Below the pieces are notes generated by a model. That model was not told the origin of the DNA. It did not search any database and worked only from the letters and a program-made list of their open reading frames with translations. A DNA stretch of 64,000 nucleotides, taken from positions 186,001 to 250,000 of the IMG/VR virus record IMGVR_UViG_3300042922_000643. The stretch is one strand, 5' to 3'. Position numbers and translations under genes: made by a program. Of the stretch, positions 11,800-58,236 are shown piece by piece (position 1 is the first letter of the stretch; each line of letters starts with the position of its first letter).

Positions 11800-12171
11800 A
11801 TGAAATGGCTGGAAGTGTATATGCAGGGGGAATTGCGGTATCAGGCACCGATTGTGGTCTTAACGAAGATTTATGATCGTGAAACGGGAGAGGGGTATAT
11901 TGCTTATCTCTCCGAGGAATCCTTTGAGGGATTGAAACATGCGGTTCGTAGTTGCGAATCGACTTGGAGTTTCACGTATAGTTCTGTGGCTGACTTTGAG
12001 ACCCTGGTCTATGCGGCGACAGATTCGGTGAATAAGCTGCTGAAAAGCGCAAGGCATGGCTGGTGTCACCTACAGAATGCCTCGGACAAGAGGTTCGGGG
12101 TATCTTATGTGGTCGTGGACATCAATAATAGCGTGGCGGTGTCGTACCTGAGCGATATGGAGGACGAATAG
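11800..12171 (+). CDS. small protein with C-terminal N-x6-L-x-D/E motif
   Basis: ends DINNSVAVSYLSDMEDE. Confidence 0.7.
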   Translation: MKWLEVYMQGELRYQAPIVVLTKIYDRETGEGYIAYLSEESFEGLKHAVRSCESTWSFTYSSVADFETLVYAATDSVNKLLKSARHGWCHLQNASDKRFGVSYVVVDINNSVAVSYLSDMEDE

Positions 12172-12172
12172 G

Positions 12173-12547
12173 ATGAGGTATCTAGTCAGTCTCTTAACAG
12201 GAGAGAAGTACCAGATTATCGCGATGGAGAAAGCGCTGGAGCGGGGCTATGTCTGGGTGGGTGTACTGGCGACGCGTGATCGAGTCGTCTCTGACTTTGG
12301 GCGGGAGCAGGCCTATGGTGTGGGCGAACTGAGTGAAGCTCGGTGCCTTTACCTGGATGAGGAATACACGCATGTCTCTTTTGAAGAGATGATGCATCAT
12401 GCAGGCAACAGGTTCTACTGGATACGGTTTTTGATGGATATTCCGACGCTGGAGATCCAAGGCAAGGGGGCTGACGCTGCGGTGATCATCGCCGAAGAGT
12501 CAGGGAATGAAGTTTGCCTACGGCTCCTACAGGAGGTGGAGGAATGA
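12173..12547 (+). CDS. small protein with C-terminal motif
   Basis: ends SGNEVCLRLLQEVEE. Confidence 0.7.
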   Translation: MRYLVSLLTGEKYQIIAMEKALERGYVWVGVLATRDRVVSDFGREQAYGVGELSEARCLYLDEEYTHVSFEEMMHHAGNRFYWIRFLMDIPTLEIQGKGADAAVIIAEESGNEVCLRLLQEVEE

Positions 12548-12939
12548 AGCGGATACGCTTTACACGGCTAGAGACTGTCGTCGATAAAGAAGTCGTGGTG
12601 ATCAGCCAGGAGGAGAATCATGAGGGTCACTATTGGGTGCTTCATGAGGTTACCCCTGAAGAGATCGAATTGGATGCAAAGAATGGATATCCAGGGATCT
12701 TTGGGACCACAGGAGCGCCATTACGAGGGGAGCAGGTACTGTATGCCCGTCCAGGGTTTGACCTGTTTTCGGATGAAACCATTGGTGACTTGACCATGGA
12801 TAGTTCCAAGTATCGGTGGGAGAAAGTTAAACATTTGAGTGGTGTGGGGATGACAACGCAATCGCCCACCGAGCTGATGTTTTACGAGGATGATAGTAAT
12901 CAAGGATTTGTATCGATCCTGGAAGATATAGAGGAGTGA
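12544..12939 (+). CDS. small protein with C-terminal motif
   Basis: ATG 12544 after GGAGG; ends DSNQGFVSILEDIEE. Confidence 0.7.
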   Translation: MKRIRFTRLETVVDKEVVVISQEENHEGHYWVLHEVTPEEIELDAKNGYPGIFGTTGAPLRGEQVLYARPGFDLFSDETIGDLTMDSSKYRWEKVKHLSGVGMTTQSPTELMFYEDDSNQGFVSILEDIEE

Positions 12940-12943
12940 GGCA

Positions 12944-13084
12944 TTGCGAGTCATCATGATTCTCCTCATGGTCGGGATTGCCTTCGGCGCACTTGGACCT
13001 GTATTCTGGTTTGTGGCGGCGCTGTGGCTGATCCTGGCCTGTATTCAGAAGTACCGTGACTGGGAGAGGAGGCACAAGCTGTGA
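12944..13084 (+). CDS. small membrane protein (not in ORF track)
   Basis: GAGGAG RBS, TTG start, 46 aa hydrophobic (ILLMVGIAFGALGPVFWFVAALWLILAC). Confidence 0.5.
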   Translation: MRVIMILLMVGIAFGALGPVFWFVAALWLILACIQKYRDWERRHKL

Positions 13085-13497
13085 AGTTTTTAAAGATTAA
13101 GCAGGGAGCAGAGCTGTTTGGGAATTCCCTGGTCCCTGTTCACGCCATCATTGATCTGGGTCCCAATAGTAATTCAGAAAGAGGGCGGGATCGGCGGCGA
13201 TACCTATGGCTGATTACCTTACCTGAGCCGCTGATGAGGATCAGGTCTTCTCTTTCGGGGTACAGTGGGAGAACTAGCCTGGCAAGAGAGCTAAGGCGAT
13301 GGTACGATTTCCACGACATGTCAGGAGGGAGCTTTACCCTCTCTTATGTGGAGGCGAAGGTCTATCAGGATGAGGGGAGTCATTACGGTAACGATTTGCT
13401 GTGGATTCGTCCGAATGAAGTCGCTTATGTGGATGAGCTTGACGAAGAGCAGCTGGATAATGATCGCCTTGTAACGTACCTAGAGGAGGCGGAGTGA
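13081..13497 (+). CDS. paralog family A protein with C-terminal motif
   Basis: VPVHAIIDLG...YLWLITLP...LRRWYDFH; ends LDNDRLVTYLEEAE. Confidence 0.75.
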   Translation: MKFLKIKQGAELFGNSLVPVHAIIDLGPNSNSERGRDRRRYLWLITLPEPLMRIRSSLSGYSGRTSLARELRRWYDFHDMSGGSFTLSYVEAKVYQDEGSHYGNDLLWIRPNEVAYVDELDEEQLDNDRLVTYLEEAE

Positions 13498-13913
13498 TGA
13501 GTAAGTATCTACTTCGGCTGAACGAGGGAGCCCAGGCAATGGGACGGAGTTTCCTTGAGGTACATGCGATCATTGCCCTTGACGTGGGTGAGGGACGGTA
13601 TATTTATCTGATCTCCTTGCCGAAGGATCTGTCTTCGATGAAAGATTCCTTTCGCGGCTATGCCCTTCATCCTTCCGCATTGAATTCGAACCGAGTGAAG
13701 GAGCTACGGCACTTATATACCTTTCATACCGTTAGCTGCGCAGGATTCGAGGTGACCTACGCGGCAGACAAAGTGTACCGAGAACATGGAAGCGAGATCA
13801 CAGGGCGAAGAGACCTGATCTGGATTAACCCGCGAAAGAATGCGTATGTGGACTTGATCGAGCCCGACGCGCTGAACAACGAAATCTATGTGCAGTTACT
13901 GGAGGAGGGATAA
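13494..13913 (+). CDS. paralog family A protein with C-terminal motif
   Basis: LEVHAIIALD...YIYLISLP...LRHLYTFH; ends LNNEIYVQLLEEG. Confidence 0.75.
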   Translation: MMSKYLLRLNEGAQAMGRSFLEVHAIIALDVGEGRYIYLISLPKDLSSMKDSFRGYALHPSALNSNRVKELRHLYTFHTVSCAGFEVTYAADKVYREHGSEITGRRDLIWINPRKNAYVDLIEPDALNNEIYVQLLEEG

Positions 13914-13915
13914 CG

Positions 13916-14308
13916 ATGGGGGATCGTAGACAGTTCATCCTGCTGGATAAAGGTCCTGACTTTGCCGTCGGCGTTCCGATTCGGGTCTACTGTATGATCG
14001 AGGTGTGGGATAAGATCCTCTACCTGGTGGAAGAAGCGGACGTTTACCGCGACCAGAAGGGGACATTCTGCAAGCATTATGCAACCAATTCGGGGAGAGG
14101 GTCAAGTCATCGCGCTCTATGGTACGAAGAAGAAGTCTACGCGCGAGAAGGTACATCCTTACGGCCTGGACTCATTTGGATCTCCATTCGTGCGCCAGGA
14201 CGATTATCCCCCGAGGAACTGGCGAATACGGGAACGATTGACATGGCCACCGCGGAAGACCTCACGAATGAACAGGTCCTAGCAACCTTGGAAGAGGTGG
14301 AGCCATGA
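13916..14308 (+). CDS. family A-like protein with C-terminal motif
   Basis: EEEVYAREG...LIWI; ends LTNEQVLATLEEVEP. Confidence 0.7.
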   Translation: MGDRRQFILLDKGPDFAVGVPIRVYCMIEVWDKILYLVEEADVYRDQKGTFCKHYATNSGRGSSHRALWYEEEVYAREGTSLRPGLIWISIRAPGRLSPEELANTGTIDMATAEDLTNEQVLATLEEVEP

Positions 14309-14691
14309 GGTGGGTGATGCTTCTGTGCGAGAAGAACAATCAGGTCGAGGGCGTTCTCTTTCCTGTGTTTCGTATTCTGGAATTCAGAGGAGGGACCCAT
14401 GCCTACTTAATCGGTATGCCTGATACCTACAAGAGTCAGAGGTCGTTCGATTATATGCGCAAACAGATTGAGGAGAGTCGCTTTATGATAGACACTACCT
14501 CTCAGGCTGCGTCGATGAAGACCACGTATGCCGCCAAACCCGAGTATGCGGCAGCAGGTCCTAGGGAGATTCCCAATACCTGCTGGGTGCATACCAGCCG
14601 CTCCGATGCCGAAAGCTTTGTGGATATCGAAGGTGTGCTAAACAACGAACAAGCGTTACAGTTCCTATATACAGAGGATATGCAGGAATAG
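14305..14691 (+). CDS. family A-like protein with C-terminal motif
   Basis: ends LNNEQALQFLYTEDMQE. Confidence 0.7.
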   Translation: MRWVMLLCEKNNQVEGVLFPVFRILEFRGGTHAYLIGMPDTYKSQRSFDYMRKQIEESRFMIDTTSQAASMKTTYAAKPEYAAAGPREIPNTCWVHTSRSDAESFVDIEGVLNNEQALQFLYTEDMQE

Positions 14692-14770
14692 AAATGGTTT
14701 GGGCCTATTATTGACCATATCATGTATATTGATTGCATAAACGATGCATAAAAGGAGGAAATCATGCATA

Positions 14771-15181
14771 ATGTATATTCAATGTACGGATCATACAGGG
14801 TATAGCTATACAGGGAAGGTATTGCACCAAGCCAAAGGGCAGCAGGGAATGTACTACAAGGTGGAACGTACCCCTGATCTTCAAGCCTTTATCGAGGAAC
14901 GGAACTATATCGTCATGACTTCCTTGTCCCAGACCTGCCCCACTCAGTACCGCGACCCTGATTACACGAGTCAAAAGTGGAACGATCAGGATCGCCCTTG
15001 GCTTCGACAGCTCAAGATGGAGGAAATCGGCATCACCATAACCATTCTCCCAGGCCTCAACAACGAGGATATGCTCCTCATGCTCCCCGATCAGGACGAC
15101 GATCAAGGGATGCAACCTGGCCGTAAATACCCAAATACTGGGGGTCTAGGTACTAAAGGTAAGAGAGGTTGGGGTTGGTAG
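14771..15181 (+). CDS. small protein with near-C-terminal motif
   Basis: GLNNEDMLLMLPDQDDD followed by a ~20 aa tail. Confidence 0.6.
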   Translation: MYIQCTDHTGYSYTGKVLHQAKGQQGMYYKVERTPDLQAFIEERNYIVMTSLSQTCPTQYRDPDYTSQKWNDQDRPWLRQLKMEEIGITITILPGLNNEDMLLMLPDQDDDQGMQPGRKYPNTGGLGTKGKRGWGW

Positions 15182-15333
15182 AGGTAGGATAGTGGCTGAA
15201 TCCCTTGCTGCGTAAGGGTTTATTCATTTTCGCACTTTGAAAGGGGTAAACACACGGGGTAAGGGATTTTTCTATGTTCCTGTACGTGTTAATATGTATA
15301 CATATGTATTAAAACACACAAAGGAGGTATAGT

Positions 15334-16221: not shown

Positions 16222-16245
16222 GACATACATAAGGGAGGGTACATA

Positions 16246-16668: not shown

Positions 16669-16669
16669 T

Positions 16670-19518: not shown

Positions 19519-19767
19519 GTGAAAACTGAGAAAGGAATGATCATTAAGATTGGCCCTCACCCTACCATTAATCCAAGTGCTCTAGGTTTAGTATACGTTA
19601 TTACAGAACCTAAAAGTTGGGGCAGCCTGGATACAGGGAAAGTTATTTCAAACCCAAATGGATGGTTAAGTGAAGAAGTAAGGCATGCGTTTGATCCTAA
19701 CTATGATGTTCTTTTGCCTGAAAATAATGAATATTACGCTAAATTTTTTCTAAAGGATGATTCGTAG
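19519..19767 (+). CDS. paralog family C protein with C-terminal motif variant
   Basis: KGMIIKIG..P....ALGLVY...RHAFDPNYD; ends ENNEYYAKFFLKDDS. Confidence 0.7.
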   Translation: MKTEKGMIIKIGPHPTINPSALGLVYVITEPKSWGSLDTGKVISNPNGWLSEEVRHAFDPNYDVLLPENNEYYAKFFLKDDS

Positions 19768-21150: not shown

Positions 21151-21426
21151 ATGTCAATTGAAATAGGTAGCATTGTCCGTCTAGGTGAAAATCCTTCTGT
21201 GTATGAAACAGCATGGGGTCTAATTTTTGTCATTGAAAATTTTAAAGAAGAAGATACTGTTATTCAAGTTCATGGTCACATTTTAAAATCTCCTGGCGGT
21301 TGGTGGGGGTATATGAATGAGATCAGTCACGAATTTAATCCAGAGTATGATACTATAATGAAGGCTGATAACATCCAGCTGCTATCTCTCCTAGAGGAGG
21401 AGGATGAGTATGGAGATAAAGATTAA
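21151..21426 (+). CDS. paralog family C protein with C-terminal motif
   Basis: AWGLIF...HEFNPEYD; ADNIQLLSLLEEEDE. Confidence 0.7.
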   Translation: MSIEIGSIVRLGENPSVYETAWGLIFVIENFKEEDTVIQVHGHILKSPGGWWGYMNEISHEFNPEYDTIMKADNIQLLSLLEEEDEYGDKD

Positions 21427-21676
21427 AAAAGGCATGATTATTCAAATCGGGCAAAAGCCTAGTGTAGATAAATCTGCTCAAGGCTTGATCTATGAAGTTG
21501 TAGATGTCATGTCTACTTCGGGTAAAAGTACACGAACTTATGGAAAAGTTACTCATGATCCAGGTCATTGGGGAATGAGTGATGTTAGGCATACATTTGA
21601 CCCTGAATATGATAGTATTGTCACCTTTTCCAATGAACATGCTGTTACGTTTCTCAAAGATCAAGATGAGGGGTGA
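21410..21676 (+). CDS. paralog family C protein with C-terminal motif
   Basis: KGMIIQIG...AQGLIY...RHTFDPEYD; ends FSNEHAVTFLKDQDEG. Confidence 0.7.
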   Translation: MEIKIKKGMIIQIGQKPSVDKSAQGLIYEVVDVMSTSGKSTRTYGKVTHDPGHWGMSDVRHTFDPEYDSIVTFSNEHAVTFLKDQDEG

Positions 21677-44839: not shown

Positions 44840-44877
44840 TCTGCTTCTAGCAGAATTGGCTAGATTCTTGTAAACTA

Positions 44878-44918
44878 GGGCAGGAGGGGCTACCAAGCTC
44901 TTTCCTGCCTTTTTTTAT
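44878..44918 (+). terminator. rho-independent terminator after the Ubl gene
   Basis: GGCAGGAGGGGC...GCTCTTTCCTGCC followed by T-tract. Confidence 0.7.
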
Positions 44919-44960
44919 GTAACTTTGGGCAAATAGACTCAAAAGGAGGTTCGGAAAACA

Positions 44961-45404
44961 ATGGATGAAATCTTAATTACTAGTATTAATGGTGTACCCA
45001 TCAACAGAGCAGTCCCACTCACCACAGAAGAGGTTTTCTTCGGAGAAGATGATCAAGTTGAAGGCGGTAATGGGCTTGAGCAGGAAGCTGCAACAGCTGT
45101 AGAGCCTGAAGCACAAAAAGACGTCTGGGAAGCTAATGAATTCCAGTCCGTTTATCGTCAGCTCATTGGTCATTTCGAAACATTAGAATCCCGAGACACA
45201 CTGGATAGTCGGACACGGGAACTTATGAGCTTGATTGGTGAAGCTACAACTGTTTCCGAATTTGATAGTTATAGCGATGACCAACTCAACAGTTTTCTTT
45301 CTCAGATTCATAATGTTCTTCCGCGTCTTGAAAGAAACTTTAGCCAGTTCGATTCGGATATGGCTAGATCCCGCGCAGTCGTCGCCGATATTGATTTTAT
45401 TTAA
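44961..45404 (+). CDS. acidic hypothetical protein in the Ubl operon
   Basis: AAGGAGG RBS, 147 aa. Confidence 0.7.
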   Translation: MDEILITSINGVPINRAVPLTTEEVFFGEDDQVEGGNGLEQEAATAVEPEAQKDVWEANEFQSVYRQLIGHFETLESRDTLDSRTRELMSLIGEATTVSEFDSYSDDQLNSFLSQIHNVLPRLERNFSQFDSDMARSRAVVADIDFI

Positions 45405-45418
45405 GGAGGTGTTAGGTC

Positions 45419-47047: not shown

Positions 47048-47059
47048 GGAGGATTTACC

Positions 47060-47839
47060 ATGGCAAATGAATCTGTTCAAGCTCCAGCTCCGACGGCTGC
47101 AACACCGAAAATTACCATTGAAATTATGGCAGACCATGCACAAATTACCACCGTGAAAAACGGTGTTCATGCAGTTAAAAGTACAACTCTTGCGGATATT
47201 CAAAGCGTTCTTGTTCGTGACCGTTCACTTGAGACTCCCCTTCTTCCAGGGGAGTTTGGAACTCAGAAGTATATCGCTTCAGGTTCCCGTGAATTGTACG
47301 CAGTAACGACTCCTGAGCATATTCGCAAGGTGACTTTCGATGCTCGTGGAGATGGCCGCGGACTTGTTGAATACAAGATTCCAGTTCCATCAATGCTCTG
47401 GATCATGATCGTTAATTGTAAGGACAATCGTCGTAGTTTGCATCACACCATGGCGTACGCAATTCGGAATCCTATCCTTAGTGAAAGAGATCCGATGTAC
47501 GTATTCCCGTTCTCTAATGTGAATCATGAGTACTGCTGCTGGGGTGAAAATGAAGTTTCGATCAGCATCCCAAAAAGTATTCAAACGATCCCTGATCAGT
47601 TCATGTCGGGCTACTTTAACAGTGATCTTGACGGCAATAAATTCCAATCATTCGATTGGAAGAAAAATGACCGTGTGATTTCCGCATTCCGTACGAGTCA
47701 TTTCTTTGAATATCTGGACGAAGAACAGAAGAAAGCTGAAGCCGACGGCAAGAACGCGGAATTCAAGTGGGATGCTCTTCATTCTGCTAATAAGAACTTC
47801 GCAGAAGCCATTGCTCAAGAAGCTCGGCGCTTAGGCTAA
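47060..47839 (+). CDS. prokaryotic E2-like protein (PRTRC protein B / Prok-E2 family D type)
   Basis: PSMLWI...YVFPFSNV..YCCWG...FMSGYFNSDL. Confidence 0.8.
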   Translation: MANESVQAPAPTAATPKITIEIMADHAQITTVKNGVHAVKSTTLADIQSVLVRDRSLETPLLPGEFGTQKYIASGSRELYAVTTPEHIRKVTFDARGDGRGLVEYKIPVPSMLWIMIVNCKDNRRSLHHTMAYAIRNPILSERDPMYVFPFSNVNHEYCCWGENEVSISIPKSIQTIPDQFMSGYFNSDLDGNKFQSFDWKKNDRVISAFRTSHFFEYLDEEQKKAEADGKNAEFKWDALHSANKNFAEAIAQEARRLG

Positions 47840-47984
47840 GAAGGAGAGGAATGTTGTGATCGAATACTGGAAACAGCGCTGGAATCTTGATATCGGCTTT
47901 ATAACCGAATACTGGTGGTTGTATATCATTCTTGCAGTCGTATATGTTCTTGTCTTTCTTTTTATGAAAGGACGGGATTAAGAT

Positions 47985-48413
47985 ATGCCACGCAAACCTT
48001 GTATAACTCACAATGATGTTAAAATTTGGCGGGTATACGACGGCGGAGATTCAAGAGCTTATTGGTTTGCGTGGCATCCTGGCCATACAGAGGACGGCGA
48101 CGATTTCCAATTCGATGTTCGTGATCTTTCCACTTACCGTCGTAGCTATGAAGAATATATTAAACAAGGTATGTCTGCTGCAAAAGCTTACGCAGGTTAT
48201 CAGTCAGATATCAGAAGATTCATTAAGGAGGCCATTGATAAAGAAGAGATACTTCCTGATGGCCCCATCCCTCGTGATGACAACAATATTAAAGAACATC
48301 GTCCCGAAAAGCTGAAGTTAATTCGTGAAGTTTATGAAGCTAAGCGGCGGCAAACTTGGGAAGAAATGATCAATCGTTTTAATAAATCAAAATCGGAAGG
48401 AATGAGTATATAA
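47985..48413 (+). CDS. hypothetical protein in the Ubl operon
   Basis: 142 aa, overlaps the JAB start. Confidence 0.65.
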   Translation: MPRKPCITHNDVKIWRVYDGGDSRAYWFAWHPGHTEDGDDFQFDVRDLSTYRRSYEEYIKQGMSAAKAYAGYQSDIRRFIKEAIDKEEILPDGPIPRDDNNIKEHRPEKLKLIREVYEAKRRQTWEEMINRFNKSKSEGMSI

Positions 48414-49789
48414 TGACAAAGAAAGAAAAAGCATTGGCAGCAGCAGCGGCAGCTGAAGCAACAACTGGAACAGCAACTACGGAGGTAACGGCTCCTGTTC
48501 AAACAAGAGAAGAAGCAATGGCAGCGTTTCGTGCTCAACTTGCTGGTGAAATTTGCCAGTATGTACCATTCTCCGTTGGCTTAACTCTTGATGATGTATC
48601 GAATATGCCTACAAACGTTGTTATCGCAAAAAATGGTCTGTTTCGTGTATCCAAGACACCTATCGGTTATTTTGCAACTCAGCTGGCCGTAGGAGACGCT
48701 AAATTCGTTATTCCTGGTGTTCAGGAAATCAAGAAGGGTGTTACGCTTTCTATTCCAAAAATTCCTTTCGAGTACTGGCTGGAAGTTCTGTCATTTTATC
48801 GTGATGTATATAACAAGGATAAAACAGAAGCATCATTATTGTTCTTCTGGAATGACCGCGAAATTACATTGCCTACTGAATTCACTGATGGTACTCCGAT
48901 TAAAGGTCTTTCGGAACGCGGCCAGCTAATCATGTATTGTCCGTCCCAGAAGAATAGTAGCGGTCTTTCAAACTTCACAGCAGATACTATGGTTCCATGG
49001 CTGCGGACGAACACAACGCCGTTACTCGAAACCCATTCTCACCATACAATGGGCGCTTTCTGGTCGTCAACGGATAATGACAATGAGAATATGAATCAGT
49101 TCTATGGCGTCTACGGTGAAATTTTGAAACCTGATCCAAAATTCCTTTTCCGTTATGTGCATGGAACAGACAAGTCGGATATTGACTTCTATGAACTGTT
49201 TGAAAAACCTGTCACTATTACTCAGGTTATCATCGGCGATAAAGTAATTGATATTCAAAATGCCGTAGAATACAAAGGTCCATGGCCAAATCTTGAATAT
49301 CCTGCTGACTGGATGGAGAAACACGCTGTTAGTTACACAGTGACTCCCAGTTATGGCGGCGCAGCGGGTGGATATGGACGTGGCGGCCAGGGCGGTGGAT
49401 ACGGTCAAAATAATGGATATGGTTATGGCGGCGGCGCAAGCGGGTACGGACGCGGTGGTCTTGGCTATGATGATGACTATGTTGCAAGCCAATATCGTGC
49501 AGGAGCTGGAGGAACCGCAGGTGCTGCGGGACAAGCCAAGCTGCTTGAATTCGATGAGAGCAAAAAAAACACCGTGGACGGGGAGGACGTGGCCGATCTG
49601 ACCGACGGAGTGGTCAAAAAGGTTATCGAAACAAAAACAAGCACCGTTGAGATCGTGGCCTTGCAAAGATTGTCCCCCTTTTCCGAAAAGCAGATTTTTT
49701 CGCTTTGTGAGGAATTGTCAGAGATGGGCTACGACCAAGTTATTCACGGGACGATCCAAGCGATGATTGGAATGACGGAGGAGGCGTAA
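48413..49789 (+). CDS. JAB/MPN metalloprotease (PRTRC protein A type) with Gly/Tyr-rich tail
   Basis: E (KTEAS) plus ETHSHHTMGAFWSSTD = HxH-x7-S-x2-D JAMM motif. Confidence 0.85.
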   Translation: MTKKEKALAAAAAAEATTGTATTEVTAPVQTREEAMAAFRAQLAGEICQYVPFSVGLTLDDVSNMPTNVVIAKNGLFRVSKTPIGYFATQLAVGDAKFVIPGVQEIKKGVTLSIPKIPFEYWLEVLSFYRDVYNKDKTEASLLFFWNDREITLPTEFTDGTPIKGLSERGQLIMYCPSQKNSSGLSNFTADTMVPWLRTNTTPLLETHSHHTMGAFWSSTDNDNENMNQFYGVYGEILKPDPKFLFRYVHGTDKSDIDFYELFEKPVTITQVIIGDKVIDIQNAVEYKGPWPNLEYPADWMEKHAVSYTVTPSYGGAAGGYGRGGQGGGYGQNNGYGYGGGASGYGRGGLGYDDDYVASQYRAGAGGTAGAAGQAKLLEFDESKKNTVDGEDVADLTDGVVKKVIETKTSTVEIVALQRLSPFSEKQIFSLCEELSEMGYDQVIHGTIQAMIGMTEEA

Positions 49790-49835
49790 TTGCCTCCTGT
49801 TTTTCTTTACTAAAAATTGATCGGAGGAATGGAAA

Positions 49836-50798
49836 ATGGATTTTGAATTGAAAAATAACTTCGTATTGGATGTAAAAGCAAATGAACCAAAACATTTTGT
49901 ACTGATCGGTTGCGGCGGTAATGGCGCATATTTCATTCGGGACTTCATTCGTCAAGTTGCTATTCAAAACATGCAAATGTCTATGTCTTTGGATAAACGT
50001 TCGCACTGCGTTACTGTTATCGATGCCGACGAAGTTGAAGACAAGAATTTGACTCGTCAAAACTTCGTACAGAAGGACGTCGGATCTAATAAATCACAGA
50101 TTCTTGCAAATCGTTACGGTTCAGCTTTCGGCGTACCGATTCGGTATGTGCCCGAATATATTCAGAACGAAGAGCATCTTTTGTCTATCATTCAGGGACA
50201 ACCAGGAACGCCTGTCATCCTCGGAGCTGTCGATAACAATAAGACCCGTAAGATCATCTATGATACCTATAAGAAGCTCAGCGGAGCCTTCTGGATCGAT
50301 GCTGGTAACGAGCAATATGCAGGCCAGGTTGTTTGTGGGTATAACTACCCTAGCGCACCTGACACAAGCAAAGCTCGGGAACCTCATCAGTTCTATATGC
50401 CTTGTGCAATTGATATTTATCCTGAAATCGCTGAAGCAACAGATAAACTTCCTGGTGAATTGTCCTGCGCAGAACGTTCAGTATCTGCACCGCAGAACAT
50501 TTTCACAAATATCACAGCTGCAACAATCATGATGGGATTTGCGAATATCATTCTCACCGCATCGAATGTTGCTGAAGGCGAAGGACTTCGCTGTCATGCT
50601 GTAACTTTCAATACTCATAATACCATCGCTCAGACTACTCGATTGAATCATGAAGATTTATTAGCTGCACGCTATGTAGCTCCTCCTGTAGCTGAAGCAC
50701 CAGAAGCTCCAGTCCCTACACCAGCGGTGAAGAAACCTGCATCCAAGAAAAAGAAAGCTCCTGCATCCGCTGCTCCTGTTCCTGCACCAACAGCATAA
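49836..50798 (+). CDS. E1-like ThiF-family adenylyltransferase (PRTRC ThiF type)
   Basis: LIGCGGNG, IDADEVEDKNLTRQNF, KS..LA.RY, VDNNKTR, DAGNE, ELSCAE (candidate catalytic Cys). Confidence 0.9.
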   Translation: MDFELKNNFVLDVKANEPKHFVLIGCGGNGAYFIRDFIRQVAIQNMQMSMSLDKRSHCVTVIDADEVEDKNLTRQNFVQKDVGSNKSQILANRYGSAFGVPIRYVPEYIQNEEHLLSIIQGQPGTPVILGAVDNNKTRKIIYDTYKKLSGAFWIDAGNEQYAGQVVCGYNYPSAPDTSKAREPHQFYMPCAIDIYPEIAEATDKLPGELSCAERSVSAPQNIFTNITAATIMMGFANIILTASNVAEGEGLRCHAVTFNTHNTIAQTTRLNHEDLLAARYVAPPVAEAPEAPVPTPAVKKPASKKKKAPASAAPVPAPTA

Positions 50799-50861
50799 CT
50801 GAATAAAAAAATGAAGGGGGAGGCGACTCTCCCTTGTACATATTATATTGAAGGAGGCGCT

Positions 50862-51278
50862 ATGATGCTTGAATTTGGTAACCGTCGGCGAATAGTCCGA
50901 CTTGAAAATAAAGTAATCGAACTGTTGAAAGAAAACAAAGAGCTTCAAAAAAGTTTAAAGGAAAAAAGAAAGTTCTACGATCCTCAATGGGGAAAAGAAA
51001 TCACCGTCTCTCCTTATGTATTTGAAAGGTATATCAAACATATAGGCCGACCCACTCTTGGAGGATACCTGGTATATTGTGAAGATGGTACTTCTTATAC
51101 GGTAAATATCGACGAAGAAATGAGTGACGGATATATCCGTTTTGAACAAGCTTTTGAAGAACCACACGGGGAATGTAAATATTGTTCTAAATTTTTTAAA
51201 CTTTTTGATGGGTACCCGAAAGATAGTCCTGATTTTTGTAGCCATGACTGCTATAATCGTTTCTTAAAGGAGACTTAA
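50862..51278 (+). CDS. hypothetical protein with treble-clef Zn finger
   Basis: CKYC...FCSHDC. Confidence 0.65.
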   Translation: MMLEFGNRRRIVRLENKVIELLKENKELQKSLKEKRKFYDPQWGKEITVSPYVFERYIKHIGRPTLGGYLVYCEDGTSYTVNIDEEMSDGYIRFEQAFEEPHGECKYCSKFFKLFDGYPKDSPDFCSHDCYNRFLKET

Positions 51279-51279: not shown

Positions 51280-51585
51280 ATGAAAGTCCTACTTCCTAAT
51301 GGAAATTGGCCTTATAGTTTTAGACCTCAATTACCGTGTGCTGTCTTGATGACTATTCAATATGAACAGAAAATTTATCATCTTATTCATAGATCAAATT
51401 ATAATCCTATTTCCTATTCGGGTCTTTTACCTAGAGCCCAATTGCTTTACATTGATCCTAATCATACCCACTTACTTACTCTAATCAATTTTTCAGATTT
51501 TATGTGGACTGAAGAATCAGAGATTGATCTGTTCGAAGAATTTAATAATGAGTATCTATCCCACAAATTACTTACCGATTTCTAG
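51280..51585 (+). CDS. small protein with C-terminal motif variant
   Basis: ends FNNEYLSHKLLTDF. Confidence 0.6.
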   Translation: MKVLLPNGNWPYSFRPQLPCAVLMTIQYEQKIYHLIHRSNYNPISYSGLLPRAQLLYIDPNHTHLLTLINFSDFMWTEESEIDLFEEFNNEYLSHKLLTDF

Positions 51586-51919: not shown

Positions 51920-52234
51920 ATGAGTATGGAAGGTATTCTTAAATTCTATCCAGAAGGTTCTATTATCTGGAAAGGAAAACACGATACAAGAGATAATTAC
52001 TGTTTTATTAAAGTAGTAAATCGTGAAAGTGGTTGCTCAATCCCTAAAGAATGTTATGAATATTTACACAAAATAGGATTAGGTGAGTTTACTCATGAAG
52101 GTAGAAGTTGGCCCTATACGTTGAGTAAAGGCTGGTCTACTATGGTAGATAGTCTCGACGGTATAGAAGTGGTTCCGCCTTTTCATATAAATAATGATAC
52201 TCTTATCCATATGCTTTTGGACGAGGAGGATTAA
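51920..52234 (+). CDS. paralog family G protein with C-terminal motif
   Basis: FYPEGSIIWKG...CSIPKECYEYL; ends INNDTLIHMLLDEED. Confidence 0.75.
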   Translation: MSMEGILKFYPEGSIIWKGKHDTRDNYCFIKVVNRESGCSIPKECYEYLHKIGLGEFTHEGRSWPYTLSKGWSTMVDSLDGIEVVPPFHINNDTLIHMLLDEED

Positions 52235-52237: not shown

Positions 52238-52579
52238 ATGCGTCCTAATGATTATATTACAAAATATGTTCCTGACGGAGCAATTGTCTGGGCAGGTTTG
52301 GACCCAAGTTCTTCATACGAAACATATTGCAAGATTTATGTTTACACCTGGAGGGCTTTTGATGAGTGTTATATCCCAGATGAATGTGCCAAATATTTAA
52401 AGCGTATGGGACTGCAAGATTATATTTACCGTGACCCACATTCTAATGGTTATTTAAAAGGCGAATATCGTTTAATGGGTGGATATTATACTTCTTGTGA
52501 TAGAATGACATATGAAACTGTTTATTCTTTTAACAATTCAACTGCTATTACTTTTTTACCAGATTTGGAGGAGCACTAA
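52238..52579 (+). CDS. paralog family G protein with C-terminal motif
   Basis: YVPDGAIVWAG...CYIPDECAKYL; ends FNNSTAITFLPDLEEH. Confidence 0.75.
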   Translation: MRPNDYITKYVPDGAIVWAGLDPSSSYETYCKIYVYTWRAFDECYIPDECAKYLKRMGLQDYIYRDPHSNGYLKGEYRLMGGYYTSCDRMTYETVYSFNNSTAITFLPDLEEH

Positions 52580-52881
52580 TGAATAGTATAGCTGACTTCT
52601 TTCCAGTTAAAAGTGTACTTTGGTCGGGGTTGTCACCGATAGTTAATAGTACCTGTCATATCGAAGTTTGTAGTGACCCTTCCCACCACTGCTATATACC
52701 TCCAGAATGTGCTAAATTTTTAATAAGCATGGGGTATAAAGAATGCATAGTGGAAGATTATTACTCCTGGGAATACGCTTTAAGAGGAGGATTCCATGTA
52801 GGTGGCTTAAAAGAACCAACAGTCACTTTTAAACAAATCTCCAATTCTACTTTTGCAGAATTTTTGAAAGATACTGAATGA
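52579..52881 (+). CDS. paralog family G protein with C-terminal motif
   Basis: FFPVKSVLWSG...CYIPPECAKFL; ends ISNSTFAEFLKDTE. Confidence 0.75.
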   Translation: MNSIADFFPVKSVLWSGLSPIVNSTCHIEVCSDPSHHCYIPPECAKFLISMGYKECIVEDYYSWEYALRGGFHVGGLKEPTVTFKQISNSTFAEFLKDTE

Positions 52882-52886
52882 AGGTA

Positions 52887-52915
52887 TTGCAACTGTATTG
52901 ACGTTATGGTACAAT
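52887..52915 (+). promoter_or_regulatory. sigmaA-type promoter
   Basis: TTGCAA, 17-nt spacer, extended -10 TG-N-TACAAT. Confidence 0.7.
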
Positions 52916-52966
52916 CATTTTTGTTGAGAAGTGATCGGGAAAATACATTAAAAAGGTGGAGATAAA

Positions 52967-53515
52967 ATGAACCCAGTTCGAGAAGAAAATAAGATTACAA
53001 TTGCTGAAACCGTTGCTGTAAAAACCTATATGACACGTCACCTCAGCGAGCTGCAATCGGAGCGTACTCGTGCTGCTACAGAGGAAGTCGATAAAGGCGC
53101 TACTGCTGAAATTCCAGCACGTAACGTTGATGTAATCACAGATGAAATCTGGGAAACGTTCAAAGATATTCGAACTATTGAAAATCTCCTTGAACAAGCC
53201 AACATTCAAAATTATGTTGAATGGGATGGGCAAAAGATCACTGTTAGCGAAGCAATCTCTTTCGCTAAACAAATTCGTAGCCAAATTGATACGCTGAAGA
53301 GTCTCGGCCAACGAAAGAAGATTGATAAGGTTCCAAATCGTCCATTTGGCACAACGGATTCGGTTCCCCAAATTCGTGTGGCTCTTTACGATCCTGATAA
53401 ATACCGTGAATATGCGGCAAAGCTGGAACGTCAAGTCAATGCTCTTTCTAGAGACATTGATCACTCGAATCACACGAATTATATCGTGTTTGACGCTTCA
53501 AAATATATCGGATAA
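52967..53515 (+). CDS. DIP1984-like helical protein
   Basis: ITIAE.V..K...SELQSE...AN.QNYVEWDGQKITVSEAI..A.Q.R...YDPDKYR..A.KLERQ...L...I...N pattern. Confidence 0.6.
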   Translation: MNPVREENKITIAETVAVKTYMTRHLSELQSERTRAATEEVDKGATAEIPARNVDVITDEIWETFKDIRTIENLLEQANIQNYVEWDGQKITVSEAISFAKQIRSQIDTLKSLGQRKKIDKVPNRPFGTTDSVPQIRVALYDPDKYREYAAKLERQVNALSRDIDHSNHTNYIVFDASKYIG

Positions 53516-53559
53516 TATGGAGGTAGACATAATCATCTTCCTCTTTTACGTAACCTGAG

Positions 53560-54370
53560 CTAGCACTTTGATGCTGCTCAGCTTGAAGGATATAACGTTT
53601 ATACAGTGTTTTCGCTATAGACCGTTGACGCCTTAGCTGCTGAGGTTATATGCGATGTACGGCACTCGAAGACCTTGCATCCTTCAAGCTGAGCGAAGAA
53701 GATTATACGACGTGCTGAAGAGTAGCCATATCCGACGCCTGAGCGAACAGGGGCTAGGCTTTGAAATCCCCTGACTCCTAAGACATTAGCGTCCGAATTC
53801 TTCTCCCCAGCTTGAAGAGTATAAGTGGTAGTAGGCCTGGAAGCAGCCATCTTAAGAGTGGGACAGCGGCTATAACTTGCTCCGTGACACTGGGCTAACT
53901 CGGGTAGCGGATAAAAGCATTTTATAGAGAGGAAATAAGGAGGCACCCCGTAACTGGTAAGGCCGACCTTTCCCTTTAGCGTAATAGCACACCATTTATA
54001 CTTTTCAAGCTGTTTGGGGAACAGCAATCGTCTATTTCCAGAAAATCAGCCTCTATCATGAGGGAGGAGAGAAATCTCCTCCACAGCTTGAAGCTCCCAA
54101 GTTAAATAAAATAGTCGTTCAAATCGACGGCGTGGGTTATCCTCGCCAGCCATTGGAGGCACTTGGGAGTTACAAGCTGTGGGAACACAGCAGCAGGAAG
54201 ATGTGAGCAACAGGGTTCTAGCCAGCTGACCTGGTTAGACGCGTATCGGCGGTGGTTATCCAGCGTGCGAGACACAACCAAACCAACTTGACATTGGTGT
54301 TACCTTAGGCAGGTACAAGAACCAACGTATAAGCGAATAACGGTTGACACCTTACGATAGTCACATCTAA
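53560..54370 (+). ncRNA. large multi-domain structured RNA with six alternately oriented CAGCTTGAAG repeats; contains cassettes F and D
   Basis: stems 53576-53591/53679-53694, 53808-53829/53991-54012, 54081-54102/54161-54182, 54199-54206/54361-54368; no credible ORF. Confidence 0.7.
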
Positions 54371-54494
54371 CATACTCCTTTGGATATTTCCTTTCGGAAA
54401 TTCGGAAAAGTCTCTGCTTCCTGCTTTATTTTAATATTCTCTAGGGGGACACATGGTGTGTCCTCTTTTCCATTTCTATAAGGCGGTGATATTT

Positions 54495-54890
54495 ATGAAT
54501 TACCTTGATCCACGAGAAGGAAAAGAAATCACAGGTAGTACGGGGGAAATCCGCGTCAGACTCGTTGGTGGATCATTTCATGAATCTGCCTTTGCTACTG
54601 TTAAAGAGGGGGACGAAGTTACCCTTCAAAAAGAACCCAAAAATAAATATGACAGATATGCTATTGTAGTGCTCTCTGAAAATAACCGTGTTTTGGGTTA
54701 TATTGCCAATAGAGTAGAAACTATTGGGAGAAACAAAGCAACAAATTCCGCAGCGGATGTATATAGACATATCAACGATAGAACATCAGCTATCATAATT
54801 GATAAGAGTCCAAGCTCTGCCGTACTTTTGATTAATGCTTCGAATGAAGTTTTTTTAAATAGATTAAAGGAGGAGAAGTTCGATGATTAA
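54495..54890 (+). CDS. HIRAN domain protein with C-terminal motif
   Basis: VKEGDEVTLQKEPKNKYDRYAIVVL....LGYI; ends ASNEVFLNRLKEEKFDD. Confidence 0.85.
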   Translation: MNYLDPREGKEITGSTGEIRVRLVGGSFHESAFATVKEGDEVTLQKEPKNKYDRYAIVVLSENNRVLGYIANRVETIGRNKATNSAADVYRHINDRTSAIIIDKSPSSAVLLINASNEVFLNRLKEEKFDD

Positions 54891-55176
54891 TTCTAGATCA
54901 TCTTCTTTAGTAGAATTAATAGAGATGTCTCTCTTAGCTAATCACGAAATTCTAGTTCTTTTATCTCGTAACTCTGGTTTTAGTTCACAAGCTGGAGAAA
55001 AAGAAGTAGGTCGTATTTTAAAATCTATTGGTTATATGAACGAACCTTGGTTTAAAGTTGAATGGAGCATCAGAAGAACTACCAACAATTATCCATTAGA
55101 GGATCTTATCATTATTTCTTCAACGGACTTTAATAATGAAAATCTTTCTAAGATTTATCTTAGAGATATGGATTAG
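54883..55176 (+). CDS. paralog family H protein with C-terminal motif variant
   Basis: VGRI...WFKVEW...NNYPLEDL; ends FNNENLSKIYLRDMD. Confidence 0.7.
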   Translation: MINSRSSSLVELIEMSLLANHEILVLLSRNSGFSSQAGEKEVGRILKSIGYMNEPWFKVEWSIRRTTNNYPLEDLIIISSTDFNNENLSKIYLRDMD

Positions 55177-55190
55177 GAGGTTCGTTCTAT

Positions 55191-55472
55191 ATGATTACAG
55201 AAGAAATTATTTTAAGCCATATTCGTCATGGAAAAGTGATAGAAGTTTTGCTATCTCGATATTCTGAATACGCTGAACAAGCAAAAGAAGATGAAATCGG
55301 AAAAATTACTGGCAAACTGGATGATGATGGTGATCTTGAAGGTATATGGTTTCAAGTCGAATGGGATTCAGGCGATGTGAATTATTATCATTTATCAGAT
55401 CTGATTTTCATTAATTTTTCTACGGATAATTACAGTATGCTTTCTCTTCTCCAAGATATCGACGACGTATAA
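55191..55472 (+). CDS. paralog family H protein with C-terminal motif
   Basis: IGKI...WFQVEW...NYYHLSDL; ends TDNYSMLSLLQDIDDV. Confidence 0.7.
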   Translation: MITEEIILSHIRHGKVIEVLLSRYSEYAEQAKEDEIGKITGKLDDDGDLEGIWFQVEWDSGDVNYYHLSDLIFINFSTDNYSMLSLLQDIDDV

Positions 55473-55610
55473 AGTAAAGTCACAATAGGATTTATACGCT
55501 TCGATATAGTCAAGACCCGTAGTCTATTACTGGGTTGAAGCCACGTAACCTTCCATCGGAAACGTGGCTGTCTATAAATCTGCCGAAGATCCTATTGTGA
55601 CTTTACTTTA
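55470..55610 (+). ncRNA. RNA cassette E
   Basis: perfect 22-bp stem 55470-55491/55589-55610 plus U-G; TATACG 55493-55498; CCGAA 55583-55587. Confidence 0.8.
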
Positions 55611-55629
55611 TAATAAGGTGGGAACATTT

Positions 55630-57789
55630 ATGAGAACGTTAGTCCTTACTCGTGGTATAATGGCTTCTTCAAAATCAACATGGATTGCTGAAAATGGTCT
55701 TGCACCTTTTACTTTATCTAGTGATAACTTGCGTCTACTCCATTCTGCTCCACAGCTTCAAGAAGATGGCAAGCAGGTAATAGCGGGATCGCAAGAAGGT
55801 AAGATCTGGAAACTTTTATTTGAAGTTTTGGAGCGACGTATGCAAAACGGCGATTTTACCGTCATTGATGCAACACATATTACTTCGAGTTCCATTTCTG
55901 AGTATCGTGAACTGGCTAATAAATATCGTTATCGCGTGTTTGTAGTGGATTTTACTAATGTTCCTTTGGAAATAGCTTTAGAGCGGAATAAAAATCGTGA
56001 AGAATATAAGTATGTTCCAGAACATAAGATTGAAATAGCTTATGCTAAGCTTTCAGAAAATCATGTGCCTTCTTATGCGAAAGTTATTAAACCAGAAGAA
56101 TTCTGGGATCATGTTTCATATACAAAAATTGATTACAGCTCTTATCGCAAAATTCATCATATCGGGGATGTTCATGGATGCTACAGTGCATTAATGACTT
56201 ACCTTTCAGGCGAAATGAAGGAAGACGAGTTGTATATTTTTGTTGGTGATTATCTAGACCGCGGCATTCAGAACCGCGAAGTTTTAGAATTCCTCATTCA
56301 GATTAAAGACCTTCCAAATGTTATTCTTCTTGAAGGTAATCATGAAACTCATCTTCGCAAATGGTCAATGGATGAAACCGTTAAAAGTTTAGCATTCAAC
56401 CACTATACCGAAAAAGAGATTCATGATGTTAATAAGTCCGCTGTTCGTGAACTGTGCAGAAAGTTCAGACAGGTTTGTTATTATGAATATTACGGCAAAA
56501 CAGTGCTCGTCACTCATGGAGGCTTATCCTGCATTCCAAACGAACTTGCTTTGATCTCGACTTCTCAATTTATTAAAGGAGTAGGAAATTATGAAGTTGA
56601 TATTGATGCTATTTTCTCGGCTTCTGAACAAGATGGAACGTACCAGGTCCATGGTCATCGCAACATCTTCAGACTGCCTATGCAAGCCGCTGAGCGTTCT
56701 TTTAACCTGGAGGGTAGAGTTGAATCAGGAGGAGACTTAAGGGCTCTTACACTAACTCCTGAGGGGTTTCAAGAGCATTGTATCCAGAATCATGTTTTTA
56801 CAACAGAACATTCTCCAATGCCTCCCGTTGTAGGTTCCAAAACAACTACAGACAATTTCATTGAATACCTTCAGTCACACAAAATGGTTAAAGAAACACA
56901 GATAACTGATCATATTTCATCTTTTAACTTTACACGTAAAGCATTCAATAATGGCGTTTGGGATACGCTTAACATCAAGGCTCGCGGCCTTTTTGTGAAT
57001 AAGCATACTCGAAAGATCGTTAGCCGATCTTATGATAAGTTTTTTAATATTGACGAAGTTCCAGCTACAAAGATGGGAACATTAGCCAATACCCTGGAAT
57101 TTCCTGTGATTTTGTCAGAAAAACCGAATGGATACCTAGGTATTATCGGGTATGATGAGGAGACAGATGAACTGATCTACTCTTCCAAGTCTGAAACTCG
57201 TGGTACTTATGCGGTATCATTCAGAAAACTTTTCGAAGAAAAAGTTCCTGTTGAAATACGTGCTTGGCTTAAAGGATATCTTTACGGAAATGACGTGTCG
57301 ATAACTTTTGAGGTTATTCTTCCACAAGAAGATCCACACATCATAGAATATAAAGAGAATACTTTGATCTTACTCGATATTATCCAGCGAAATGTTCAGT
57401 TCCAAAAGAGATCTTATTCCGAGGTTGTTGAGCTCGCAATGAATCTTCTTCTTCCATATCGTAAAATCAAATATGTCTTCCATAACTGGTTAAGTTTCTA
57501 TCACTGGTATCAAAACGCATCTCAAGATTATTCTGTTAAAGAAGAAGGGTATGTCCTTGAAGATAATTCAGGTTTTATGACAAAGATAAAATTACCGTAC
57601 TATCTTTTCTGGAAGCAAATGCGTACAGCAAAATTCCAGGTGAAGATGGAGGGCTATATGCTTCCTCAGTGGTTGCCGCCAATTCCTGACGATCTTAAAA
57701 ATTTCGTTGGGTGGGCTAAACAGCAAGATCAGGAGTATTTGAAACGCGTGGATGTTATCCAGTTGCGTACAGATTACGAGGGCTCTTAA
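55630..57789 (+). CDS. polynucleotide 5'-kinase / metallophosphoesterase / RNA ligase fusion (Pnkp-like RNA repair enzyme)
   Basis: P-loop-like RGIMASSKST and DATH; phosphoesterase GDVHG, GDYLDRG, GNHE, THGG, HGH; ligase KARGLF, EKPNG, EEGYV, KIK; start taken at ATG 55630. Confidence 0.88.
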   Translation: MRTLVLTRGIMASSKSTWIAENGLAPFTLSSDNLRLLHSAPQLQEDGKQVIAGSQEGKIWKLLFEVLERRMQNGDFTVIDATHITSSSISEYRELANKYRYRVFVVDFTNVPLEIALERNKNREEYKYVPEHKIEIAYAKLSENHVPSYAKVIKPEEFWDHVSYTKIDYSSYRKIHHIGDVHGCYSALMTYLSGEMKEDELYIFVGDYLDRGIQNREVLEFLIQIKDLPNVILLEGNHETHLRKWSMDETVKSLAFNHYTEKEIHDVNKSAVRELCRKFRQVCYYEYYGKTVLVTHGGLSCIPNELALISTSQFIKGVGNYEVDIDAIFSASEQDGTYQVHGHRNIFRLPMQAAERSFNLEGRVESGGDLRALTLTPEGFQEHCIQNHVFTTEHSPMPPVVGSKTTTDNFIEYLQSHKMVKETQITDHISSFNFTRKAFNNGVWDTLNIKARGLFVNKHTRKIVSRSYDKFFNIDEVPATKMGTLANTLEFPVILSEKPNGYLGIIGYDEETDELIYSSKSETRGTYAVSFRKLFEEKVPVEIRAWLKGYLYGNDVSITFEVILPQEDPHIIEYKENTLILLDIIQRNVQFQKRSYSEVVELAMNLLLPYRKIKYVFHNWLSFYHWYQNASQDYSVKEEGYVLEDNSGFMTKIKLPYYLFWKQMRTAKFQVKMEGYMLPQWLPPIPDDLKNFVGWAKQQDQEYLKRVDVIQLRTDYEGS

Positions 57790-57816
57790 GAGCCCTTTCT
57801 CTTAGGAGGTGAGACC

Positions 57817-58236
57817 ATGTCATATCATTACTATACAACCTCAACAACTTCGACAACTTATAGTGGTTATTACAATACAAGTCAAAGAAAGAAAGCTGCT
57901 AAAAAACACAGACCCTTATCAGAAGAGTCAGAATTACTATCCATCATGATATCCGACAAATTAAAAAGGAATAAGGAAGTATTCATAAGCCTTAAAATGG
58001 ATACCCGTATTTTAAGGGATTTGAATAGGGTCTCTGGGGGTACGATAAATCAGACAACTGTTTTAAAAGTACTCGGTGTTTACGTGAGTTCCTTTGGAAA
58101 TCATAGCGTTATTACTCAGCATCCTGACATTTTAGCAGGAAGAGATATTAAAATATCTTTTTGTGATTTGGAACCAAAATTTGTAAATGAATTCGATACG
58201 GAAGATATGTTAATCATACTTCCTGATTTTGAATGA
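57817..58236 (+). CDS. small protein with C-terminal motif variant
   Basis: ends FDTEDMLIILPDFE. Confidence 0.65.
   Translation: MSYHYYTTSTTSTTYSGYYNTSQRKKAAKKHRPLSEESELLSIMISDKLKRNKEVFISLKMDTRILRDLNRVSGGTINQTTVLKVLGVYVSSFGNHSVITQHPDILAGRDIKISFCDLEPKFVNEFDTEDMLIILPDFE

Follow-up and report, generated by a model that had tools for sequence, protein, structure and literature searches.

A C-terminal box shared by dissimilar small proteins of jumbo phages, a candidate docking tag

The C-terminal box and the genes that carry it

The window analyzed here, 64,000 nucleotides corresponding to bases 186,001-250,000 of IMGVR_UViG_3300042922_000643, belongs to an uncultivated phage of 251.5 kb. At or near their C-termini, 29 of its small proteins carry a short motif, N-x6-L-x-[DE], or a one-residue variant thereof, hereafter called the "box". 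The substantial genes of the window lie without exception on the plus strand, in an arm that begins at a divergent junction, ~2 kb upstream of the window, and consists of a long accessory region followed by genes for replication and nucleotide metabolism. With its counterparts in three Bacillus jumbo myophages, vB_BauM_KLEB27-3, vB_BceM_WH1, and Edson, the DNA polymerase III alpha of the phage shares ~57% identity. The same phage was also recovered, at 99.99% identity, from several metagenome assemblies. About 90 of the 109 window genes lack a homolog even in KLEB27-3. The box genes, referred to below by their start positions, are listed in Table 1 together with their principal neighbors.

A first-pass annotation, made from the nucleotide sequence alone, had described 23 open reading frames (ORFs) with an exact motif and six with a one-residue variant, and our retranslation from all 29 starts gave the same counts. 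The box Asn (position 0) is located 10-15 codons before the stop codon in 27 of the 29 genes. In 21151 the distance is 18 codons and in 14771 it is 39, the latter being the sole copy with a long extension after the box, a Gly-, Lys-, and Trp-rich stretch of 27 residues that ends in GWGW.

How far does this exceed chance? In a greedy set of 109 plus-strand genes, the exact motif occurs within the last 20 residues of 21, as compared to expectations of 0.3 from the internal rate (four matches in 15,249 positions), 0.6 from whole-protein shuffles, and 1.7 when only the last 20 residues are shuffled (maximum 8 in 1000). None of the 147 minus-strand ORFs has the exact motif. When all six frames were searched with a 25-position hidden Markov model (HMM), the 26 ungapped members were the only matches (E<1e-3), and the remaining three, which contain a one-residue insertion, were assigned to the set by paralogy or position. 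When the core positions (-2 to +11) are scored by a matrix that leaves out the family of the protein under test, the 26 ungapped members reach 3.4-25 bits (24 of them at least 9.8), while none of the 81 non-box genes exceeds 1.1 bits. Enrichment is accompanied by a sharply bimodal distribution, and the HMM and shuffled-null comparison proposed at first pass thus places the motif at C-termini far above chance.

The N-x6-L-x-[DE] core given in the first-pass annotation stands, but its limits were drawn too narrowly: the conserved region extends from -2 to +11/+12, with the consensus h-[NSD]-N-[ESD]-x-h-[LVI]-x-h-L-x-[DE]-h-[ED]. The L-x-[DE] element is present in 24 of the 26 ungapped copies in the window, and the +9 acid likewise in 24 of 26. 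Hydrophobic residues occupy +3, +4, +7, and +10, the end is an acidic stretch, and in the canonical form the protein stops at +11. In both AlphaFold2 (AF2) models, those of 38232 (family B) and 13494 (family A), the predicted helix begins at the box Asn, consistent with the N-capped helix that had been proposed from the letters. The closest PDB sequence matches to the box profile are the helix starts of designed repeat proteins, and the box therefore reads as an idealized helix start. The box proteins are acidic, with a mean isoelectric point (pI) of 5.3. No family in Pfam, PHROGs, or the PDB corresponds to the motif, and it is not mentioned in the literature searched, including a 224-genome jumbo-phage survey, so that the earlier statement that it has no named family holds across these searches. 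The same literature does not mention KLEB27-3 or WH1.

Does selection act on the peptide or on the nucleotides that encode it? The invariant Leu is specified by all six of its codons, with CTA somewhat over-represented (chi-square p=0.007), and the box Asn by both AAT and AAC. The +9 acid is mostly encoded by GAT, which cannot be part of the Shine-Dalgarno (SD) sequence GGAGG. An SD-like sequence overlaps the last 18 nt in 17 of the 29 members and is absent from this stretch in 12, and the gap to the next gene exceeds 50 nt in 10. Since Leu uses six codons and 12 members have no overlapping ribosome-binding site, we conclude that selection acts on the peptide. The caveat raised at first pass, that overlapping GAGGAG sequences contribute to the terminal Glu runs, was well placed: SD overlap accounts for some terminal Glu, but the codon usage and the 12 SD-free members show that it does not account for the box. 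The codon usage largely rules out a DNA-level repeat or an SD artefact.

Table 1. Box genes and other features. Positions are those of the window, except where prefixed L062, L063, or L065 (same phage, downstream of the window). Bit scores are from the leave-family-out (leave-one-out) core matrix.
Feature	Position	Strand	Box	Remarks
Box protein, singleton	11800-12171	+	12121-12162	GC-rich island; INNSVAVSYLSDME; 16.3 bits
Box protein, singleton	12173-12547	+	12500-12541	GC-rich island; 9.8 bits
Box protein	12544-12939	+	12892-12933	GC-rich island; paralog of L062:7948 (E 9e-5)
Box protein, family A (alpha/beta)	13081-13497	+	13453-13494	GC-rich island
Box protein, family A	13494-13913	+	13872-13910	AF2-modelled
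Box protein, distant family A relative	13916-14308	+	14261-14302
Box protein, variant	14305-14691	+	14638-14679	Y-T replaces x-[DE]; 18.7 bits
Box protein	14771-15181	+	15056-15097	23.2 bits
Box protein, SH3-like family B	19519-19767	+	19720-19764	One-residue-insertion variant
Box protein, family B	21151-21426	+	21364-21405	20.5 bits
Box protein, family B	21410-21676	+	21626-21667	25.1 bits
AAA+ ATPase	26013-27131	+		phrog_2376, E 3e-107; WH1 gp183, E 2e-92
Box protein, family B outlier	27188-27466	+	27413-27454	Weak variant L-S-S-D; 3.4 bits; directly 3' of AAA+ ATPase
Box protein, family C	33320-33682	+	33629-33670
Box protein, family C	33689-34036	+	33983-34024
Box protein, family C	34050-34382	+	34344-34379	Ends at +9
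Box protein, family B	34499-34756	+	34715-34753
Box protein, family B	34789-35046	+	35005-35043
Box protein, family B	38232-38501	+	38457-38498	AF2-modelled; ends LPDYE
Box protein, family B	38511-38753	+	38709-38750
Box protein, family B	38765-39025	+	38981-39022
Box protein, singleton	39871-40185	+	40132-40173	2 nt upstream of Apyc1
Apyc1 (anti-Pycsar) homolog	40188-40964	+		E 1.6e-62
Ubiquitin (Ub)-like/JAB/ThiF-E1 operon	44474-51278	+
Box protein, singleton	51280-51585	+	51541-51582	One-residue-insertion variant; directly after E1 operon
Box protein, family D	51920-52234	+	52187-52228
Box protein, family D	52238-52579	+	52529-52570
Box protein, family D	52579-52881	+	52837-52878
HIRAN-domain box protein	54495-54890	+	54837-54878	10.7 bits vs 0.6 maximum background
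Box protein, family E	54883-55176	+	55129-55173	One-residue-insertion variant
Box protein, family E	55191-55472	+	55422-55463	Matches phrog_11307, 9469, 18715
Pnkp/RNA-ligase fusion (polynucleotide kinase-phosphatase)	55564-57789	+
Box protein, singleton	57817-58236	+	58192-58233	T replaces N; ends LPDFE; 13.2 bits
Eight box genes flanking Tad2-like gene	L062:4962-8283
Two box genes between thymidylate synthase and DHFR	L063:12871-13480
One probable further copy	L065:8084-8344

Carriers and gene neighborhoods

What kinds of proteins carry the box? With the box trimmed off, the window carriers fall by phmmer into 15 groups—five multi-member families and ten singletons—and into 25 groups when the downstream copies described below are added. 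Profile-profile comparison of the groups with hhalign gave no significant match. HIRAN, SH3-like, alpha/beta, and apparently all-alpha carriers occur with no detectable mutual similarity, in agreement with the earlier description of a portable module on unrelated carriers. The HIRAN domain that had been recognized in one of them, 54495, scores above the Pfam gathering cut-off (PF08797; 40.7 bits vs 24.7; residues 17-74 against profile positions 2-58 of 96), and the protein also has weak matches to the HLTF HIRAN structures.

The family B model (38232; AF2 predicted local distance difference test score, pLDDT, 76) is a five-strand SH3-like barrel followed by a helix from the box Asn. Its best Foldseek match in the PDB is B. 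subtilis SPbeta YorP (E 9.5e-3, TM 0.61-0.64), followed by KOW, Tudor, and chromo domains, and the BFVD search reached E 2e-4. Several of the proteins to which Foldseek pointed are paralogs whose UniProt accessions adjoin, and they probably belong to a single cultured phage. The family also has weak profile matches to PsaE and NdhS. These predictions are consistent with the SH3/KOW-like carriers suspected at first pass. The likeness to the YorP/KOW/PsaE-type barrels, in five predicted strands and a C-terminal helix, is confined to family B and concerns one carrier group rather than the box; the family has no Pfam or HMMER match. A full HMMER search with the family B profile against 1.84 billion representatives returned its nine members and one spurious repeat protein only.

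For family A (13494 model, pLDDT 62), an alpha/beta fold is predicted, in which residues 129-138 form the box helix; Foldseek gave no meaningful fold match for this model, and the genome and IMG/VR scans found only the family itself. Among the window carriers, PHROGs matches were obtained for the HIRAN protein and 55191 only. A word-indexed search of 5.8 billion proteins, using the profile of all 29 proteins, the HIRAN-box protein, and the family A profile, returned the window's own proteins only. The downstream carriers include proteins of 47-73 residues that appear all-helical by eye.

Eight consecutive box genes form a GC-rich island at 11752-15181, with a GC content of 0.49-0.54 and a third-codon-position GC content (GC3) of 0.49-0.62, as compared to a GC content of 0.30-0.41 for the flanking and other box genes and a GC3 of 0.17-0.38 for the latter. 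No source of the island was found in any collection searched. One island gene, 12544, is a paralog of low-GC box genes located ~57 kb away, downstream of the window.

The box genes do not end at 58236, where the first-pass list stopped. Another 10-11 copies are present 5-30 kb downstream of the window, which brings the phage total to about forty box proteins, while the 9 kb upstream of the window contain no copy. All of the downstream copies end exactly two residues after +9, a spacing found in 19 of 40 copies overall. Apyc1, the Pnkp/RNA ligase, and the downstream Tad2-like gene (L062:5907-6227) are each directly adjoined by box genes, which therefore populate anti-defence neighborhoods.

Several other features of the arm deserve mention. 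WH1 gp208 and gp211, which carry the annotation "virion structural protein", have homologs here at 42427-44106 and 44474-44839, respectively. The WH1 gp211 is built of the 121-residue domain of 44474 repeated four times in tandem, and this domain of 44474 has a faint Prok_Ub match. The Ub-like/E1/JAB operon thus adjoins possible virion proteins. The HIRAN-box gene is preceded by a TTGACA-18-TAACAT site (54344-54373) and by 937 nt (53516-54452) with no plus-strand ORF in an otherwise densely packed arm; minus-strand ORFs lie nearby at 52904-53473 and 53599-54027. Scans for sigma-70-type promoters performed no better than on shuffled sequences, and the intergenic k-mers recovered only SD sequences. 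A group I intron (Rfam RF00028, 50.1 bits; 62357-62786) splits DNA polymerase III alpha into 59735-62374 and 62815-63750, and KLEB27-3 has an HNH endonuclease gene at the equivalent polymerase split. Just 5' of the polymerase are two tRNA-like genes, at 58722-58795 and 58822-58893, only the first of which is called by ARAGORN, with an anticodon that the program could not assign.

Variant boxes in related phages

The first HMM and matrix were fitted to the box variant of this phage, and with them we found no match in KLEB27-3 or in 14 IMG/VR and 33 metagenome loci anchored on the E1 gene. We also searched for a relaxed pattern, N-x6-[LMF]-x(1,2)-[DE], in the last 22 residues of small genes, with a shuffle control. 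In 50-kb stretches, the pattern occurs in 25 of 95 small genes of WH1 (145001-195000, locus L066; ~3 expected) and in 25 of 91 small genes of Edson, all on the coding strand (142001-192000, locus L080; 2.8 expected). In the whole KLEB27-3 genome, seven genes match and 7.0 are expected, and the pattern is therefore not enriched there.

The WH1 and Edson copies share the consensus N-x6-[LFM]-K-x-[ED], with Lys at +8 in 20 of 25 copies (WH1) and 15 of 25 (Edson), and an acid at +10 in 25 of 25 and 24 of 25, respectively. The placement of the acid thus differs by genome, as it is found at +9 in the phage of the window. A third variant, N-x6-L-[SD]-K-E-[WY], ends five tandem genes of IMGVR_UViG_3300038393_000804 (L014) and is carried by four IMG/VR loci, L013-L016. 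The motif is accordingly not confined to the window or to its phage: four phage lineages carry 5-40 copies each, and every genome is uniform for its own variant. The protein 19519 has a weak homolog in L014 that carries the box variant of L014.

By phmmer, the WH1 carriers sort into 11 groups, and a Pfam domain was recognized in none of them. One orthologous pair, L063:13184 in this phage and WH1 gp190 (E 6e-7), connects two variants, and each partner has that of its own genome. Orthologous box proteins of WH1 and Edson share 57% identity and the remaining small proteins of that arm 75%, a divergence that arms-race genes would be expected to show. The host of WH1 and Edson is B. cereus and that of KLEB27-3 is B. 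australimaris, and host lineage may matter for the distribution of the box. A single KLEB27-3 gene beside the polymerase, gp167 (150792-151157; loci L001-L005), ends with a box-like LDDQEAIQLLKD followed by ten residues, possibly a relic. A metagenome scan with the E1 protein alone gave no match, nor did an IMG/VR query with the KLEB27-3 RecA.

A proposed docking tag and its alternatives

We favor, with some reserve, the reading that the box serves as a C-terminal docking tag, specific to its clade and recognized by one shared receptor. Selection on the peptide, portability among folds, a favored fixed distance to the C-terminus, and genome-uniform variants together point to a docking tag with one co-evolving receptor, and it is the uniformity of each genome for its own variant from which we infer that the receptor is a single one. 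In this mechanism, a short amphipathic helix that starts at the invariant Asn and ends in acidic residues would serve as the docking element, with its hydrophobic face, Asn, and acidic end binding the receptor. The tag would be attached to, or retained on, fast-evolving small accessory proteins, 5-40 per genome, within a clade of Bacillus jumbo myophages comprising this phage, WH1, Edson, and IMGVR_UViG_3300038393_000804. A repertoire of unrelated domains would thereby be handled by one machine.

The first-pass annotation had likewise proposed a tag that plugs variable domains into one machine. The genome-uniform variants of the four lineages and the one orthologous pair speak for that proposal, but the E1/JAB proteins and the AAA+ ATPase, which it had named as possible partners, are not consistently associated with the box. 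Box genes follow the E1/JAB/Ub-like operon in this phage, L014, and WH1. The ATPase gene lies among box genes in this phage, in WH1, and in Edson (the last judged by position), and KLEB27-3, which lacks the box, lacks the ATPase too.

Several points weigh against a tag with one receptor. No receptor was identified, and neither candidate co-varies consistently with the box across genomes: the E1/JAB/Ub-like operon is conserved in KLEB27-3 and in 47 related loci (14 IMG/VR, 33 metagenome) that do not have the box of this phage, although L013-L016 have the third variant, and 12 jumbo-phage contigs of low GC content encode homologs of the AAA+ ATPase (~42% identity) that have no copy of the box within 10 kb. 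The variant switch was seen in only one cross-genome orthologous pair, and the uniformity within each genome could result from independent expansions of one founder per lineage. In the WH1-Edson orthologs, only the key positions of the box are more conserved than the remainder of the protein, and the whole segment is not (0.55 vs 0.57). Moreover, the C-terminal helix of SH3-like and chromo-like folds normally packs on its own barrel, and by analogy the hydrophobic face of the family B helix may be buried within the protein.

What fate might such a tag confer? It is possible, if speculative, that it acts as a "cargo address" that co-evolves with a phage-encoded receptor and gives 25-40 rapidly diversifying effectors, acting in anti-defence or host takeover, one shared destination. 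They would either be loaded into the virion for co-injection or tether host targets to a phage machine of the AAA+, Clp, or Ub-like kind, and a new effector could join the set simply by acquiring the tag. By analogy, the closest biological precedent is the capsid-targeting sequence (CTS) of the T-even phages, which is shared by diverse anti-restriction internal proteins and addresses them to one assembly (PMC3012670). As in the T-even set (IPI, IPII, IPIII, and Alt), in which many proteins are anti-defence, a peptide of about ten residues is the sole common feature of hyper-variable small phage proteins. In contrast to the box, which lies within the last 10-15 residues in 27 of 29 proteins, the CTS sits at the N-terminus, from which the prohead protease removes it. 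It is present in 3-4 copies per genome rather than 25-40 and has no sequence similarity to the box.

As specific functions, loading into the virion and an adaptor or degron tail appear to us about equally likely, and each taken alone is unlikely. In the former, the box would send anti-defence effectors into the prohead or tail for co-injection, as a C-terminal counterpart of the CTS. The T4 prohead protease cleaves at L/I-x-E sites, which the L-x-[DE] end of the box resembles; the box genes are situated among anti-defence genes, and gp208 and gp211, neighbors in the same arm of WH1, are annotated as virion structural proteins. However, cleavage after L-x-[DE] of this C-terminal tag would take off only 0-5 residues, the carriers are acidic, and the box genes lie in an early/middle arm, on the strand of the replication genes and apart from the structural genes. 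Furthermore, no small protein of the box regions of WH1 or KLEB27-3 is annotated as structural. The other function, which we hold at a similarly low probability, is a tag for a protease or unfoldase: a degron by which the removal of early proteins is timed, or an adaptor tail that delivers host defence proteins to a Clp-type protease, the AAA+ ATPase, or the phage Ub-like system. A variable domain followed by a short docking peptide near a free C-terminus would suit this role, as would the ATPase among the box genes of this phage and WH1 and its absence from KLEB27-3, the ClpP encoded by clade relatives, and the order of operon and box genes noted above. Against it stand the same ~42%-identical ATPases in 12 contigs and the wide occurrence of E1/JAB outside the range of the box, together with the acidity of the box, unlike known bacterial degrons, which are non-polar or basic. 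The ClpX-binding peptide of SspB and the ESCRT-III MIM helices bound by the Vps4 MIT domain are tails that tether proteins to AAA+ machines in this way, with a variable binding domain and then a short C-terminal peptide or amphipathic helix docking on the AAA+ N-domain, but their sequences do not match the box, and the candidate ATPase here does not consistently co-vary with it.

Could the box instead be a helix intrinsic to the fold, kept by descent from one ancestral small protein, with no shared partner or with self-association only? The tandem arrays and clear paralogy, the integral C-terminal helix of SH3-like and chromo-like folds, weak outgroup homologs with a helix at the same place, and the resemblance of the box to a generic ideal helix start would all be explained in this way. 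Although such a helix may account for the SH3-like carriers, we regard it as improbable for the set as a whole, given that the HIRAN, alpha/beta, and all-alpha carriers are not SH3-like, that none of the other 81 window genes has a similar C-terminus, that a fixed spacing to the C-terminus is favored, and that the most conserved positions are the polar ones (N0 and the acids at +9/+11, or Lys +8 in WH1), which change together from genome to genome. A signal in the nucleic acid or in translation—an overlapping SD or coupling element, a decayed repeat, or a nascent-peptide pause before termination—would account for the location of the box at gene 3' ends, its constrained distance to the stop codon, and the 17 SD-like overlaps. 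It is very improbable in view of the Leu, Asn, and +9 codons, the 12 members free of SD-like sequences, the 10 with long gaps to the next gene, and the box of 14771, which lies 29 residues before the end of the protein.

Other known systems resemble the docking tag in part. Viral adaptor boxes, such as the F-box-like PRANC of poxviruses and the BC-box of Vif and E4orf6, belong to paralogous viral proteins with variable recognition parts and a C-terminal helix box that plugs into one ligase, and this phage encodes an E1/JAB/Ub-like operon; these systems are eukaryotic, however, and the phage operon is widespread in genomes without the box. The cargo-loading peptides of encapsulins and the encapsulation peptides of bacterial microcompartments are also short, terminal, and portable among unrelated cargo enzymes, which they dock inside an HK97-type or microcompartment shell, but their consensus differs and their cargo genes adjoin the shell gene, while the box genes are far from the capsid module. 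Acidic hub tails (the SSB C-terminus, DDD[IL]PF; T7 gp2.5 and gp4) combine an acidic C-terminus with a hydrophobic or aromatic residue, and box ends of the type D-[YF]-E are common. The SSB of the phage itself ends in a classical DDDLPF, however, and the box conserves a helix with N0 and L7 rather than the last residue. Mimicry of the SSB C-terminus is ruled out, since no box copy ends in D-D-D-[IL]-P-F. Sliding-clamp binding motifs are pentapeptides of the Q-L-[SD]-L-F type, and the box position table has neither a Gln at a fixed position nor a terminal Phe. A membrane-targeting helix and the sortase, exosortase, and type IX secretion C-terminal sorting signals are ruled out as well, as the tails are acidic, with 0-5 residues after the box, and contain no hydrophobic span.

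In the accessory arm of these phages, roughly one gene in four carries the box, and nearly all of the genes so marked are unannotated orphans. WH1 and Edson are cultured phages, which makes the docking hypothesis directly testable, with the genome-specific variants as natural specificity controls. If the tag is a packaging signal, it would provide a portable handle for loading foreign proteins. If one receptor reads it, a common pathway could be assigned to 25-40 dark-matter proteins per genome, and new effectors would become recognizable by the tag alone.

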